IMG/VR virus record: IMGVR_UViG_3300044644_001125
Span: 248,001 to 312,000 of that record
Length of the DNA stretch: 64,000 nt
Reading direction: 5' to 3' (one strand)
Position numbers and translations under genes: made by a program
The notes under the pieces: generated by a model
Databases searched by the model: none
Seen by the model: only the letters and a program-made list of their open reading frames with translations
What the model was told of the DNA's origin: nothing
Part shown: piece by piece, positions 60,588 to 64,000 of the stretch
How positions within the stretch are numbered: position 1 is the stretch's first letter
Layout of the letters: every line of letters begins with the position of its first letter

Positions 60588-60884
60588 ATGAAATTCGAAA
60601 TAGCACCTAAATCAACTGAGATAGAATCCAACTGGTTTGATGCAAAACTCTATTGCTTCTCCCTTAACATAGATGGTAAGACTGGTTGGAGATTACCAAC
60701 AAGGGCAGAACTAAATGAAATTTATGAATCTGATAATGATTTCGTTATTTGCACCTACTACTGGACATCTGCTGAATTTAGCGGCACCGGTGCTTGGACT
60801 CAACTATTCATTAATGGGATCCAGAACTTCCGCACGAAGGATTACGACAAAAATCAGGTTAGAGCAGTAAGGGACTTAGCATGA
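60588..60884 (+). CDS. Short DUF1566/Lcl-like (CLec-fold) protein 1
   Basis: W.DA..YC..L...GWRLPT..EL..YWTS..AW...F..G.Q....K....VRAVR. Confidence 0.8.
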   Translation: MKFEIAPKSTEIESNWFDAKLYCFSLNIDGKTGWRLPTRAELNEIYESDNDFVICTYYWTSAEFSGTGAWTQLFINGIQNFRTKDYDKNQVRAVRDLA

Positions 60885-61177
60885 AATTTGAAATAGCACC
60901 GAAAGAAACAGAGACCCAAGCCAATTGGGATGATGCCCGTTTGTATTGCTTTGCTCTTAATATAGATGAGAAAGTTGGCTGGAGATTACCTACTATTAAA
61001 GAGTTAAACTATATAAATCGTGTGATTAATGATCTTTCAACCGAAGATTACTGGTCATCAATAGAACGACCAGACAAAAGATACGCAGAATGCTATACCA
61101 CAATCGATGGTGGTTATACGGTCAATACATTAAAACACGATTTAGGCTATGTTAGCGCAGTAAGGGACTTAGTATGA
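60881..61177 (+). CDS. Short DUF1566/Lcl-like protein 2
   Basis: MKFEIAPK..GWRLPTIKEL..YWSS..VSAVRDL; ATGA overlap. Confidence 0.8.
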   Translation: MKFEIAPKETETQANWDDARLYCFALNIDEKVGWRLPTIKELNYINRVINDLSTEDYWSSIERPDKRYAECYTTIDGGYTVNTLKHDLGYVSAVRDLV

Positions 61178-61473
61178 ACTTTGAAATAGCACCCAAAGAA
61201 TACGAGATACGAGGAAACTGGGATGATTCCAGATTCTATTGCTTTGCTCTTAATATAGATGGAAAATCAGATTGGAGATTACCAACTAAAGAAGAACTTA
61301 ACGAAATCTTCCAATCAGCACATGATTTCGAGGATGGCTCGTATTGGTCTTCTACTCCTTCCGATGTTGATGAGGTAGGCGTGCGGGTTCAAATATTCGA
61401 TACTAGTGGATTCGAATACTCCGCAATAAAGTCCAGTCCCTACGGATATACCAGAGCCGTCAGAACAATCTAA
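61174..61473 (+). CDS. Short DUF1566/Lcl-like protein 3
   Basis: MNFEIAPK..DWRLPTKEEL..YWSST..TRAVR; ATGA overlap. Confidence 0.8.
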   Translation: MNFEIAPKEYEIRGNWDDSRFYCFALNIDGKSDWRLPTKEELNEIFQSAHDFEDGSYWSSTPSDVDEVGVRVQIFDTSGFEYSAIKSSPYGYTRAVRTI

Positions 61474-61548: not shown

Positions 61549-62070
61549 ATGACCAGCAAATCAAAAAACAAAGGCAATACATGGGAACGTGAGATTGCAA
61601 ATCACTTATCCTCCATTTACAATCTAAAATTTTTAAGATGCCAAGGTAGCGGAGCATTCGTCGGAGGTAAAAACACACAGCGAAAAGCAGTATTAGATGC
61701 TGGTCAAATCCAAAGTTTCAAAGGTGATATTATCCCACCAACCGAATGGACTTCCTTTAACAGTGAAGCCAAGAACTATGCAGATTTTCCTTTTCATCAG
61801 TTATATTCAGGTGAAGTCAAACAACTTGAAACTTGGCTAGGTCAATTGGTTCAAGTGGCAGATCCAAATGATATGAATATCCTCATGTTTAAGATCACAC
61901 GTAAAGGAAAGTACGTTGCGGTTGAATCTGACAAAGGATGGGACATATCACATCCTCATACCAATTACACTTCAGTTAAGTTTGGCAACTGGCAAATCTT
62001 TGATTATGATTCTTTTTGGCAACATAATCATCAATTAGTCAAGCAATTAAGCACTATTTCGCCAGACTAA
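61549..62070 (+). CDS. Holliday junction resolvase-like PD-(D/E)XK nuclease (Hjc type)
   Basis: SKNKGNTWERE..SGA..GDI..EAKNY. Confidence 0.75.
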   Translation: MTSKSKNKGNTWEREIANHLSSIYNLKFLRCQGSGAFVGGKNTQRKAVLDAGQIQSFKGDIIPPTEWTSFNSEAKNYADFPFHQLYSGEVKQLETWLGQLVQVADPNDMNILMFKITRKGKYVAVESDKGWDISHPHTNYTSVKFGNWQIFDYDSFWQHNHQLVKQLSTISPD

Positions 62071-62103
62071 ATATCATTTTATTATTTCTCAAAAACTAAT
62101 ACT

Positions 62104-62523
62104 ATGAAAGATAAGGTAATCGTATATACTGATGGTGGGTGCATTCCTAATCCCGGAAAGGGTGGTTGGGGTGCTGTACTTATGTGCAACAACAAAGAAA
62201 AAGAACTCTTTGGTGGTGTAGATGGTACTACTAATAACCGCATGGAACTAATGGCAGCAATCCAAGCATTAAATGCCTTAACCAGACCATGTGATGTCAC
62301 AATCTATAGTGATTCAAAATATGTTGTAGATGGAATCACTAAATGGTATCCCAATTGGATTAAGAACGGTCGTACCAATTTCGTTAATCCAGACTTATGG
62401 CATGCACTGGCTGCAGCAGCTAAACCTCACAATGTCACTTGGCAATGGATCAAAGGCCATTCAGGAATTCCTGGCAATGAACGTGCCGATGAACTGGCTA
62501 TGCGAGCTATTGAGTATTGTTAA
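62104..62523 (+). CDS. rnhA: Ribonuclease HI
   Basis: [46 protein letters not shown]. Confidence 0.95.
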
Positions 62524-62611
62524 CTGTTTGTTGACTATTATTTTCTTAATAGTTAACAATAAGTGCTGTTTTTCTCTACTAAATAGAGTATAATCAATCT
62601 ATATCAGAACA

Positions 62612-62801
62612 TTACCGAGACCATCTCAAATATATTTTCACAAAAGTGTTGACAACAGGGATTAACTAAGTTACAATTAATCATACTAAAGAATTACCCA
62701 AAAGCAGTTTACCGAGACCATCTCAAATCCATACCGACACCAAGTCTATATTTTCTTTTACTTACAGAGACCATCTCAAATCATTACCGACACCAAGTCT
62801 A
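62612..62801 (+). repeat. Direct repeats: TTACCGAGACCATCTCAAAT x3 and TACCGACACCAAGTCTA x2
   Basis: Copies at 62612, 62709 and 62762; the last two are 40-nt composites. Confidence 0.9.
62649..62677 (+). promoter_or_regulatory. Sigma70-type promoter with no ORF downstream
   Basis: TTGACA-17-TACAAT. Confidence 0.75.
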
Positions 62802-62849
62802 CTCGCACAAAAGCAATTACTCAATTATCTTTTAGGCACCCGCCAAACT

Positions 62850-63345
62850 TGCTCACCGAATTACTAGATAGAACATAGAAAGGTGAGAGAATTGCTAAGA
62901 AAGCCGCGCACAGGCGACCATTACGTGCCCTTAAACCCTGGTCTACTTGAATCACAGGGGATGGAAGTTCCGACATTAGCAACGGAGATATAGTTCACTA
63001 CCCCACCAGATGAGTTATGGGATATGCCTTCATACAACCCATTTGAACTATAGCAAAAACGAATAACCAAGGCTAAAGATGGGTTGAGAAAACCCACGTT
63101 TACTAGATAAGGTAGCTGTTGTCTAGTAAGCCACCGTCAGATTAATAAGACTGAGCTCGAGGTACCGGCTGACCGCCTCTGTAATGCTCTACATGCTACT
63201 GTGATGCGATGCTTGTACGCAGAACCCTTGGACGTTTCAGTTCCACAATTAGAAATGTCCATTGTCCTTTGAATTAACCCGAGTTTTTCGGGTTAAGATG
63301 TTCAGCTCCACAACCCGCAGTGAGGGCTCCGCTGGCGCGTCGCTT
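62850..63345 (+). ncRNA. Putative large structured non-coding RNA; family not identified
   Basis: GC-richer ORF-free tract with many helices: 62852/62882, 62989/63044, 63080/63091, 63100/63120, 63153-63189 nested, 63230/63252, 63274/63288; upstream promoter. Confidence 0.7.
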
Positions 63346-63405
63346 TAATAATAGATTTAATTATTGATTTTAATAATTGTAGGAGCATATAAGATTAAAT
63401 GAATT

Positions 63406-63911
63406 CTAAAAGATAATGTACCTAATAGATACCTGCTTAAGCCACGCGCACATACATTTTTAGATGCATTCGAACCCATACATTTTAGCTGTTTCCATTC
63501 GCGCACATACATTTTAGATTCCATTATAGCTTTTTACCAGATGCACACATACATTATAAACTCCATACGAACACATACATTTTAAACTAAAAGATAATTC
63601 AATTAATAACTCAACTATAAGATCATCTATAAGACCATTAATATAAACATCAATAAGAACATCATAACTAAAAGATAATAGATCAGTAATTCACATCATC
63701 TATAAGACAATTATCTTTTAGTAATCGACATCATCTATAAGACAATCATTAATACATTATCTTTTAGTATTATTCTTTTAAATGGATAGCTACGTCTGGA
63801 GTTTATTCATTATCTTTTAGTTTCTATTATCTTTTAATGGATAACTGCGTCTAGTGGTTTCTATTATCTTTTAGTAATGATCATCAGGTGGATGGGTTCA
63901 TTATCTTTTAG
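63406..63911. repeat. AT-rich iteron-like cluster (candidate replication origin)
   Basis: CTAAAAGATAAT x3 (+) then ATTATCTTTTAG x6 (one variant); CACATACATT-type unit x5; CATCTATAAGAC x3. Confidence 0.8.
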
Positions 63912-63954
63912 TGCGTTCGTCAAATAAATAGGTTCCGGTTCATCGCGGGTTTGC

Positions 63955-63962
63955 TATAAATA
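63955..63962 (+). promoter_or_regulatory. T4-type late promoter for a gene starting at 63998, beyond the window
   Basis: Perfect TATAAATA, AAGGA RBS, ATG at 63998. Confidence 0.65.
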
Positions 63963-64000
63963 CTTGCAATACCCCATTCGAATAAGGAACCCAATCAATG

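Follow-up and report, generated by a model that had tools for sequence, protein, structure and literature searches.

Large 'ornate' RNAs without a known biochemical role, such as GOLLD, ROOL, OLE and raiA, are encoded by bacteria and prophages (PMC12286853, PMC12968392). Polynucleobacter-1, described in 2010 by Weinberg et al., is a motif of 141 nucleotides (nt) represented by 16 sequences from environmental samples and one Polynucleobacter genome (PMC2864571). It lay mostly downstream of GOS11034 genes, possible homologs of a locus of cyanophage P-SSM2 (gp218-like), was 'not detected in any sequenced purified phage' and was marked in the table of that study as possibly cis-regulatory (PMC2864571). 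The Pseudomonas jumbo phage PA5oct encodes four RNAs of 240-620 nt free of open reading frames (ORFs), ncRNA001-004, two of which account for 1-5% of phage reads (PMC7318152), and guide RNAs encoded beside an enzyme are exemplified by the IS110 bridge RNA and the OMEGA omega-RNA (PMC11208158, PMC13565253). Here we analyze an RNA gene near the end of a 64-kb window, by which we mean the whole stretch of DNA presented above, bases 248001-312000 of IMG/VR virus record IMGVR_UViG_3300044644_001125. The record, 327,256 bp long and estimated to be 92% complete, belongs to a freshwater jumbo phage; coordinates are those of the window unless marked as genome positions. We consider it very probable that this locus encodes a genuine structured non-coding RNA (ncRNA) of the Polynucleobacter-1 family, in which the known motif makes up only the 5′ third of a folded core of about 490 nt, and which the phage carries in four copies.

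The core RNA lies within a repeat module that recurs around the genome. RF01718, the Rfam model of Polynucleobacter-1, matches the 327-kb genome four times at 68-80 bits (68-76 bits for the three copies other than that in the window), and the four surrounding modules align at 77-78% identity over 1141-1247 nt (pairwise blastn). All follow the same order of tandem promoters, direct-repeat leader, GC-richer core RNA and AT-rich, iteron-like tail, and the predicted parts of the window copy are as follows.

62580-63797, + strand: whole repeat module, about 1.2 kb and ORF-free, from pairwise blastn and a four-way alignment
62589-62594, + strand: −10 box (TATAAT) of the predicted upstream promoter, from the four-way alignment; its −35 box is degenerate here (CTGTTT)
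62649-62677, + strand: predicted main sigma-70-type promoter, TTGACA-17-TACAAT, with 11 of 12 consensus matches and an expected start near 62684
62614-62801, + strand: direct-repeat leader, with GAGACCATCTCAAAT at 62617, 62714 and 62767 and CCGACACCAAGTCTA at 62734 and 62787
62852-62887, + strand: hairpin P0 (CTCACC/GGTGAG), subfamily-specific, two adjacent pairs of which are doubly changed (CTCGTC/GACGAG)
62892-62898 with 62976-62982, + strand: pseudoknot PK1, TTGCTAA pairing with TTAGCAA in the P3 loop
62903-63053, + strand: 5′ domain, the Polynucleobacter-1 motif with helices P1-P6; RF01718, 80.1 bits, E = 2e-15
63068-63203, + strand: central domain, not in Rfam, with P7, P8, PK2 and PK3a-c
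63205-63321, + strand: 3′ domain, with P9 (TGCG/CGCA, 63205-63221) and a conserved tail ending in GCAGT at 63321
63345-63797, + strand: AT-rich module tail, about 25-33% GC, with iteron-like words
Genome positions about 34.3-35.5 kb (− strand), 165.0-166.2 kb and 232.4-233.6 kb: the other three modules

The initial annotation, made from the letters of the window alone, had placed here a structured RNA of about 650 nt. A folded core is indeed present, but it is shorter than proposed; the roughly 150 nt at 62684-62830 form a leader of direct repeats, and the conserved unit as a whole is larger, extending over about 62580-63797. The statement that the tract lacks an ORF holds, as reading frames on both strands reach only 28-58 amino acids and the longest one of each paralog differs in strand, frame and position, so that none is conserved among the four copies. 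Likewise borne out is its elevated GC content, which is 0.445-0.46 across 62800-63299 compared to 0.285 upstream and 0.245-0.265 downstream.

All 4227 models of Rfam release 15 were run against the window, both at their gathering scores and at E up to 5. RF01718 was the only family above threshold in the entire 64 kb, and its match (gathering cut-off 37 bits) spans the whole model (positions 1-141 of 141). Relaxing the threshold to E up to 5 added only chance-level hits to folP, cow-rumen-2 and SCARNA7. No model for 6S RNA or the signal recognition particle RNA exceeded its threshold in the window, and none for GOLLD, ROOL, OLE, raiA, HEARO, ARRPOF or GEBRO gave a match, although the library's content of these last families was not separately checked. 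Novelty can therefore be claimed for only part of the RNA: 62903-63053 belongs to a known family, and the remainder has no Rfam match. In a limited literature collection, we found no report of the RNA in its extended form, of the phages that host it or of its linkage to other genes; neither searches for structured RNAs linked to GIY-YIG nuclease or tyrosine recombinase genes nor two ncRNA-mining preprints of 2026 brought up a description. The true size, the architecture, the hosts, the four-copy promoter-driven form and the enzyme linkage described below are thus new. The window copy resembles the 2010 motif in its full-length, high-scoring match and its freshwater source. It differs in being continued by further helices and three pseudoknots, and in residing in a jumbo phage under its own promoters, in four copies and without a linked GIY-YIG gene.

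The fold is supported by compensatory changes at two levels of divergence. The core, about 62833-63321, comprises at least 12 helices and three pseudoknots with such changes. In a close set of nine sequences, double compensatory changes occur in 17 predicted pairs. For the wide family, we counted standard pairs and double-sided changes per helix in 61 unique aligned sequences; as a control, the 3′ partner was slid by 1-3 columns, which yielded 1-72% standard pairs.

P1: 92% standard pairs, both sides changed 4/4
P4: 87.5% standard pairs, both sides changed 3/5
P6: 93% standard pairs, both sides changed 5/6
P7, 63080-63096: 90% standard pairs, both sides changed 4/4
P8, 63099-63130: 94% standard pairs, both sides changed 11/12
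PK2, P8 loop with a strand 80 nt downstream, GTAGC 63112-63116 / GCTAC 63195-63199: 93% standard pairs, both sides changed 6/6
PK3a, GTCAG 63136-63140 / CTGAC 63169-63173: 98.7% standard pairs, both sides changed 3/5
PK3b, GAGC 63153-63156 / GCTC 63186-63189: 99.6% standard pairs, both sides changed 3/4
PK3c, GAGG 63159-63162 / CCTC 63176-63179
P11, TTAACCCGA/TCGGGTTAA, 63274-63296: conserved
Hypervariable hairpin, 63230-63260: different in each paralog, yet self-complementary in each

PK3a crosses both PK3b and PK3c, and the resulting strand order a, b, c, a′, c′, b′ defines a true pseudoknot. In PK1, three pairs of copy 2 are changed on both sides with pairing retained (CTGTCAA/TTGACAG, as read in the alignments), and the helix also covaries in distant homologs (AACGG/CCGTT). 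A long-range helix proposed by RNAalifold for some of the same bases (62892-62896 with 63317-63321) shows one-sided changes only and was discarded in favor of PK1. Among the paralogs, compensatory changes are found in P2, P4 and P6 as well, and the short P5 is poorly formed in the window copy. The central domain was assessed with a covariance model, R1, that was built only from the central domain in sequences of 39 other phages, without the window phage. R1 matches 63068-63203 over its full length with 86.5 bits (E = 1e-20), recovering the features that define the domain (P7, P8, the loop-to-3′-strand pseudoknot and the GGUACCGG pseudoknot), and it matches the other three copies equally well. 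The paralog-specific hairpins have matches of 12-14 nt elsewhere in the genome, with exact 14-nt ones at genome positions 226721 and 264408, one of them inside a 399-amino-acid SegE-domain ORF in sense orientation; these are close to chance, and the idea that the hairpins have antisense targets was dropped.

Most of the helices named in the initial annotation were recovered by this comparison. Covariation supports TATAGTTCA/TGAACTATA, ATGGG/CCCAT, TGGGTT/AACCCA, TTACTAGATA/TGTCTAGTAA, GAGC/GCTC and GAGG/CCTC; for GGACGTTTC/GAAATGTCC, the other three copies carry different hairpins that are still self-complementary, and the P11 pairing is conserved. Eight of the nine helices proposed are hence real, the exception being CGG/CCG, which is invariant and overlaps the covarying PK3a strand CTGAC. 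The pseudoknot suggested between GGTAG (63111) and CTACC (62998) fails as well: no compensatory change is seen, every change breaks the pairing, and the same loop pairs instead with GCTAC in PK2. The check recommended at the time, covariation among homologs, thus came out positive both across the 61 unique sequences and among the paralogs. To call the element a large phage ncRNA with ribozyme-like complexity seems a fair description of a non-coding, apparently promoter-driven RNA with so many helices and pseudoknots, the likeness being one of fold only.

The RNA appears to be transcribed from its own promoters. TTGACA-17-TACAAT was the best-scoring site in a promoter scan of 62000-64000. Since the scan overall was not enriched (9 sites compared to 8.2 expected from shuffles), 11 matches out of 12 prove little on their own. 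Both hexamers are kept in all four copies while the spacer between them varies, and this pattern is real support for the predicted promoter, in agreement with what the initial annotation had noticed. A second sigma-70-type promoter is predicted about 97 nt upstream; its −35 box reads TTGACA in the other three copies and has been lost in the window copy. Each leader repeat can form a mini-hairpin, seen as small hairpins in the fold, and the words GAGACCATCTCAAAT and CCGACACCAAGTCTA are confined to the four modules within the genome. Contigs from four freshwater metatranscriptome runs (three samples) match 62637-63215 at 95-99% identity, one of them being 562 nt long. The assembler's word depth is 10-27 over this interval, compared to 0-7 over the neighboring SbcC, PD-(D/E)XK and RNase H genes; it falls to zero beyond 63343, and the AT-rich tail is covered by no contig. 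One contig begins near 62622, as transcription from the upstream promoter would allow.

The core beyond the 5′ third is homologous in more than 90 other phage contigs. We searched IMG/VR with a degenerate pattern derived from the motif core and obtained 110 stretches, about eight of which are chance hits. Eight of the real ones are near-identical relatives of this phage; the remaining homologs show 54-61% identity over the core and can be aligned far beyond the Rfam model, such that a profile from this genome's copies matches them from window positions 62881-62890 through 63171-63205. In these other phage loci a terminal hairpin closes the RNA and the next ORF follows immediately, with no iteron tail between them. 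Five large RNA-bearing contigs (103-282 kb, estimated 29-80% complete) hold one copy each, and their sizes and completeness imply genomes of about 350 kb. The nearest cultured relatives by SbcC are the jumbo phages PA5oct and Atu_ph07 (46-48% identity). No match was found when the window RNA and one distant homolog were compared by blastn to 50,697 records of cultured phages.

Most relatives are linked to a gene for a small DNA enzyme. The GOS11034 or P-SSM2 gp218-like family noted in 2010 corresponds to a SegE-type GIY-YIG gene, and among 100 other viral loci, 90 carry an ORF of this type (142-145 amino acids) that precedes the RNA closely and in the same orientation; the window copy lacks this arrangement, which is a typical context and not a strict criterion. 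The stop codon of the SegE-like ORF precedes by 28-71 nt a TAAACC landmark that is situated about 28 nt inside the Rfam match. The encoded protein is strongly conserved and consists of essentially nothing but the GIY-YIG domain (PF19835 over residues 3-129). In one locus, L071, a PD-(D/E)XK nuclease gene takes the place of the SegE-like gene, and a gene of the same PD-(D/E)XK family is found upstream in the window. A more divergent version occurs in bacteria, where a pattern scan of genome contigs gave mostly chance hits from which nhmmer picked eight real ones, including a complete Burkholderiaceae chromosome and a Polynucleobacter metagenome-assembled genome. All four distinct bacterial loci with visible downstream sequence continue with a small ORF and then a tyrosine recombinase of 188-204 amino acids, the size of the catalytic domain only, on the same strand. 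A DUF6641 gene lies divergently upstream of the RNA in six bacterial loci.

The relatives also share a pair of short boxes. Their 3′ domain contains ACUC-x7 followed 50-70 nt later by AUCU-x7, and x7 is identical between the two boxes in 63/63 unique sequences, with 11 haplotypes across lineages. The strongest mutual-information partner of each variable box column is its twin column. In the relatives, no sequence complementary to the 7-nt boxes was found at a constant position within 1.5 kb, whether by mutual information or by a complement search. What two recombining DNA sites need to have in common in their overlap region is identity, not complementarity. The box identity could fit such an overlap, or alternatively two RNA loops that read a shared core. 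A small ORF between the twin boxes was considered and dropped, because it is not conserved.

L014:9336-9764 and L023:1425-1859: examples of the SegE-like ORF upstream of the phage RNAs
L173:3949-6281, L180:2078-4307, L220:11-2054 and L168:3598-5769: bacterial cassettes
Loci L013-L114, about +255 to +325 from TAAACC, and bacterial loci L163, L168, L173 and L174: twin boxes

A fragment of the SegE-like genes may have left a trace in the leader. The 14-mer CCGACACCAAGTCT (62734-62748 and 62787-62801) is identical to codons of the SegE-like gene of locus L015 situated about 100 nt ahead of its stop, and the last 12 bases of the 14-mer (GACACCAAGTCT) are common to the SegE-like ORFs of L036 and L091. 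The match may be a relic of an upstream gene that has since been lost, or it may mark a functional site common to both.

The neighborhood of the window copy is rich in genes for DNA transactions. Upstream lie a PD-(D/E)XK nuclease gene and then RNase H, SbcC also flanks the locus, which sits in an SbcCD / PD-(D/E)XK / RNase H neighborhood, and the phage carries T4-like recombination and replication genes. Between SbcC and the PD-(D/E)XK gene, 60588-61473 holds three tandem paralogous genes of 98-99 amino acids, one of which (60588-60884) was scanned with Pfam and has an Lcl C-terminal-like domain (PF07603). The four copies are followed by unrelated genes, one of them convergent: a 168-amino-acid ORF without a family match and then RNA ligase; virion proteins; an 801-amino-acid protein without a family match; and a convergent large terminase.

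Our favored explanation, which we regard on the whole as somewhat probable, is that of an abundant, free-standing, trans-acting structured RNA that partners proteins of DNA transactions. Host RNA polymerase would make the RNA early from the sigma-70 promoters, and the transcript would accumulate as a stable, compact particle. It would then act in trans and not on a neighboring gene, which is supported by its own promoters, four copies and unrelated downstream genes. As a scaffold, specificity subunit or regulator, it might assist proteins that cut or rearrange DNA; this partnership is suggested by the GIY-YIG and recombinase linkage of the relatives together with the SbcCD / PD-(D/E)XK / RNase H neighborhood. 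In this phage, the RNA might have parted from the gene to which it was linked, and multiplication to four copies would have served dosage. The existence of a structured RNA stands on firm ground, as stated above, while the protein-partner mechanism itself is tentative and rather doubtful.

Several observations weigh against this explanation. None of the four copies has an adjoining SegE-like ORF, the sole SegE-domain ORF of the genome (399 amino acids) lying 5 kb from copy 3, and more generally no nuclease or recombinase gene of the linked families is found beside any copy. The 327-kb genome contains no tyrosine recombinase gene, and no DUF6641 gene was detected in it, the latter being weak evidence given that the model also matched 0/14 control genomes. 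Nor is an identical box pair present in the four paralogs or close relatives. The adjacency of genes in the relatives could reflect homing of a selfish endonuclease beside a conserved RNA gene instead of functional pairing. Single-sequence folding is modest (z of −1.75 for the + strand and +0.34 for the − strand against shuffles), only weakly better than shuffles, and the structural evidence is comparative. Finally, the metatranscriptome contigs are without strand assignment, and DNA carry-over may have contributed to them. They do not define the 3′ end of the RNA, since assembly breaks where the paralogs diverge; no intrinsic terminator was found in 62000-64000, and this lack of a canonical terminator likewise leaves the 3′ end undefined.

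A bolder form of the favored explanation, to which we would give little credence at present, holds that the RNA is a subunit of a new class of RNA-dependent DNA enzymes and lends target recognition to bare catalytic domains. The partners would be the 142-amino-acid GIY-YIG protein in jumbo phages and a tyrosine recombinase of about 190 amino acids in betaproteobacterial islands, the twin 7-nt boxes would be programmable, and the four copies of the window phage would be derived and enzyme-unlinked. Such copies might serve an unlinked protein in trans or act as competitors.

The main rival to a free-standing, trans-acting RNA is a replication origin, in which the structured transcript would form an R-loop or primer in the AT-rich iteron tail at four origins per genome. 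The tail contains the following words.

CACATACATT, four copies: 63449, 63504, 63546 and 63572, each about 13 nt after a GC-rich stretch
CATCTATAAGAC, three copies: 63624, 63697 and 63732

Both words occur genome-wide only in the four modules, in these numbers per module, and they could be iterons in an array or belong to promoter-like units stacked one after another. The tail also holds several copies of a genome-wide motif, CTAAAAGATAA/TTATCTTTTAG. The 11-mer TTATCTTTTAG occurs 169 times in the 327-kb genome, compared to about 0.2 expected by chance, with 122 occurrences intergenic; examples in the window are 62825 (+), 63406, 63587 and 63668 (reverse complement) and five copies within 63711-63901 (+). 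Many copies form inverted pairs about 28 nt apart, and the complement CTAAAAGATAA is often found just upstream of a TTGACA −35 box. This distribution suggests a regulatory DNA site that recurs throughout the phage genome in connection with host-type promoters.

T4 oriF and oriG and the ColE1 RNA II are R-loop or primer RNAs at replication origins. With these the module shares a strong predicted promoter, a structured transcript of several hundred nt, an AT-rich region downstream, several sites per genome and a nearby RNase H gene. A promoter followed by an AT-rich, repeat-bearing element is present (62649-62677; 63345-63797), and the tail lies directly 3′ of the RNA with repeated words confined to the modules. 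Spacing between the modules is about 70-130 kb, and three modules lie close to where rightward gene blocks begin; an origin would also suit the T4-like recombination and replication genes with RNase H beside the window copy. However, the homologs in more than 90 other phage loci are single-copy in the parts sampled and have a terminal hairpin before the next ORF, with no iteron or AT-rich tail. No RNA contig or other RNA signal lies over the tail, and the GC skew of the genome tracks gene orientation and gives no independent origin signal. The deep conservation of a pseudoknotted structure also exceeds the needs of a primer. Taken together, we think an origin unlikely.

A decoy or sponge RNA, made early and in bulk as an anti-defense measure to titrate a host immune or RNA-binding protein, is a further candidate; the leader might mimic a type III antitoxin, or the core might bind a sensor. 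In its favor, the host-type promoters could act early, the RNA is encoded four times and its level seems high, the tandem leader repeats form mini-hairpins, and relatives also reside in bacterial genomic islands. Against a decoy, no defense or toxin gene context was found around the locus, the RNA has no similarity to antitoxin or CRISPR-repeat RNAs in Rfam, and conservation lies in the folded core, the leader repeats being restricted to the subfamily. We therefore judge a decoy improbable.

Two further alternatives appear very unlikely. The first is a cis-regulatory leader (a riboswitch-like 5′ untranslated region) of the downstream gene, the class tentatively suggested by Weinberg et al. in their 2010 table. 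Three copies are oriented toward the genes that follow them, but these genes are unrelated and the fourth copy converges on the terminase, so that gene context largely refutes the idea. In addition, about 650 nt of AT-rich repeats separate the window RNA from the next start codon at 63998, and in other phages the motif lies downstream, not upstream, of its linked gene. The second takes the module for a dispersed repeat without function, or for what is left of a mobile cassette (a homing-endonuclease gene with its passenger), the structure being incidental. The four dispersed copies, the 14-nt leader match to the 3′ end of the relatives' SegE-like gene and the hypervariable internal segment would all be in keeping with such an origin, but compensatory changes keep the helices both among the paralogs and in homologs of about 55-60% identity, a pattern that demands selection on RNA structure, and RNA contigs are present. 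That the tract is a self-splicing intron (group I or group II), another known ribozyme or a housekeeping RNA (RNase P RNA or transfer-messenger RNA, tmRNA) is hardly credible: the size, the pseudoknots and the homing-endonuclease-type gene beside the relatives would suit it, but, in line with the initial annotation, which recognized no tRNA, tmRNA, RNase P RNA or intron here, no intron, RNase P, tmRNA or ribozyme family matches in Rfam at E up to 5 and ARAGORN finds 0 tRNA or tmRNA genes in the window, while the modules are intergenic with their own promoters, have flanks that differ between copies and split no host gene, and the PK3 strand order is, we presume, unlike the group I P3-P7 or hepatitis delta virus-like pattern.

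For Rfam, Polynucleobacter-1 has since 2010 been an orphan motif of 141 nt with neither phage assignment nor function. Our analysis places the RNA in a PA5oct-related clade of freshwater phages with sizes of about 330-350 kb, and in one of these phages the RNA is found under its own strong predicted promoters and amplified four-fold. The defined gene, promoters, four deletable copies and expression signal provide an experimental handle. In the relatives, near-obligate linkage to near-bare catalytic enzymes combined with identity-covarying 7-nt boxes is a pattern of the kind seen before other RNA-guided systems were discovered. Even without an RNA-guided reading, the RNA is a good candidate for structure determination and for studying why jumbo phages invest in abundant large RNAs.

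Among described systems, the bridge RNA and omega-RNA resemble the relatives of the window RNA in layout only. The relatives adjoin a small DNA enzyme without an evident DNA-binding domain and carry two short, lineage-variable boxes; no target complementarity was found at a constant position within 1.5 kb, and the enzymes belong to other families, GIY-YIG nucleases and tyrosine recombinases. Both the boxes and an adjacent enzyme are missing from the window subfamily. The PA5oct ncRNAs are likewise ORF-free and belong to the nearest cultured relative by SbcC (48% amino-acid identity), but they have no detectable homology to the window RNA, occupy other genome positions and come without a described structure (PMC7318152). 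PA5oct also has a syntenic, ORF-poor stretch of about 1 kb after SbcCD (L245:10148-11150; NC_071039.1, about 75,800-76,800), outside the four published ncRNAs, with a TTGACA-17-TATAAT promoter, a strong terminal hairpin, a fold z of −4.7 and only hypothetical ORFs of 38-50 amino acids annotated; it was dropped as a homolog, as no homology is detectable. GOLLD, ROOL, OLE and raiA differ in gene neighborhood and in the lack of any Rfam-model match to the window, and no sign of homo-oligomer contacts was seen for the window RNA. They have in common with the window RNA a length of several hundred nt, many covarying helices and pseudoknots, frequent carriage by phages or prophages, and abundance. 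The Polynucleobacter-1 motif thereby becomes one domain of a multiply pseudoknotted RNA of about 500 nt that falls within the range of size and complexity of GOLLD and ROOL.

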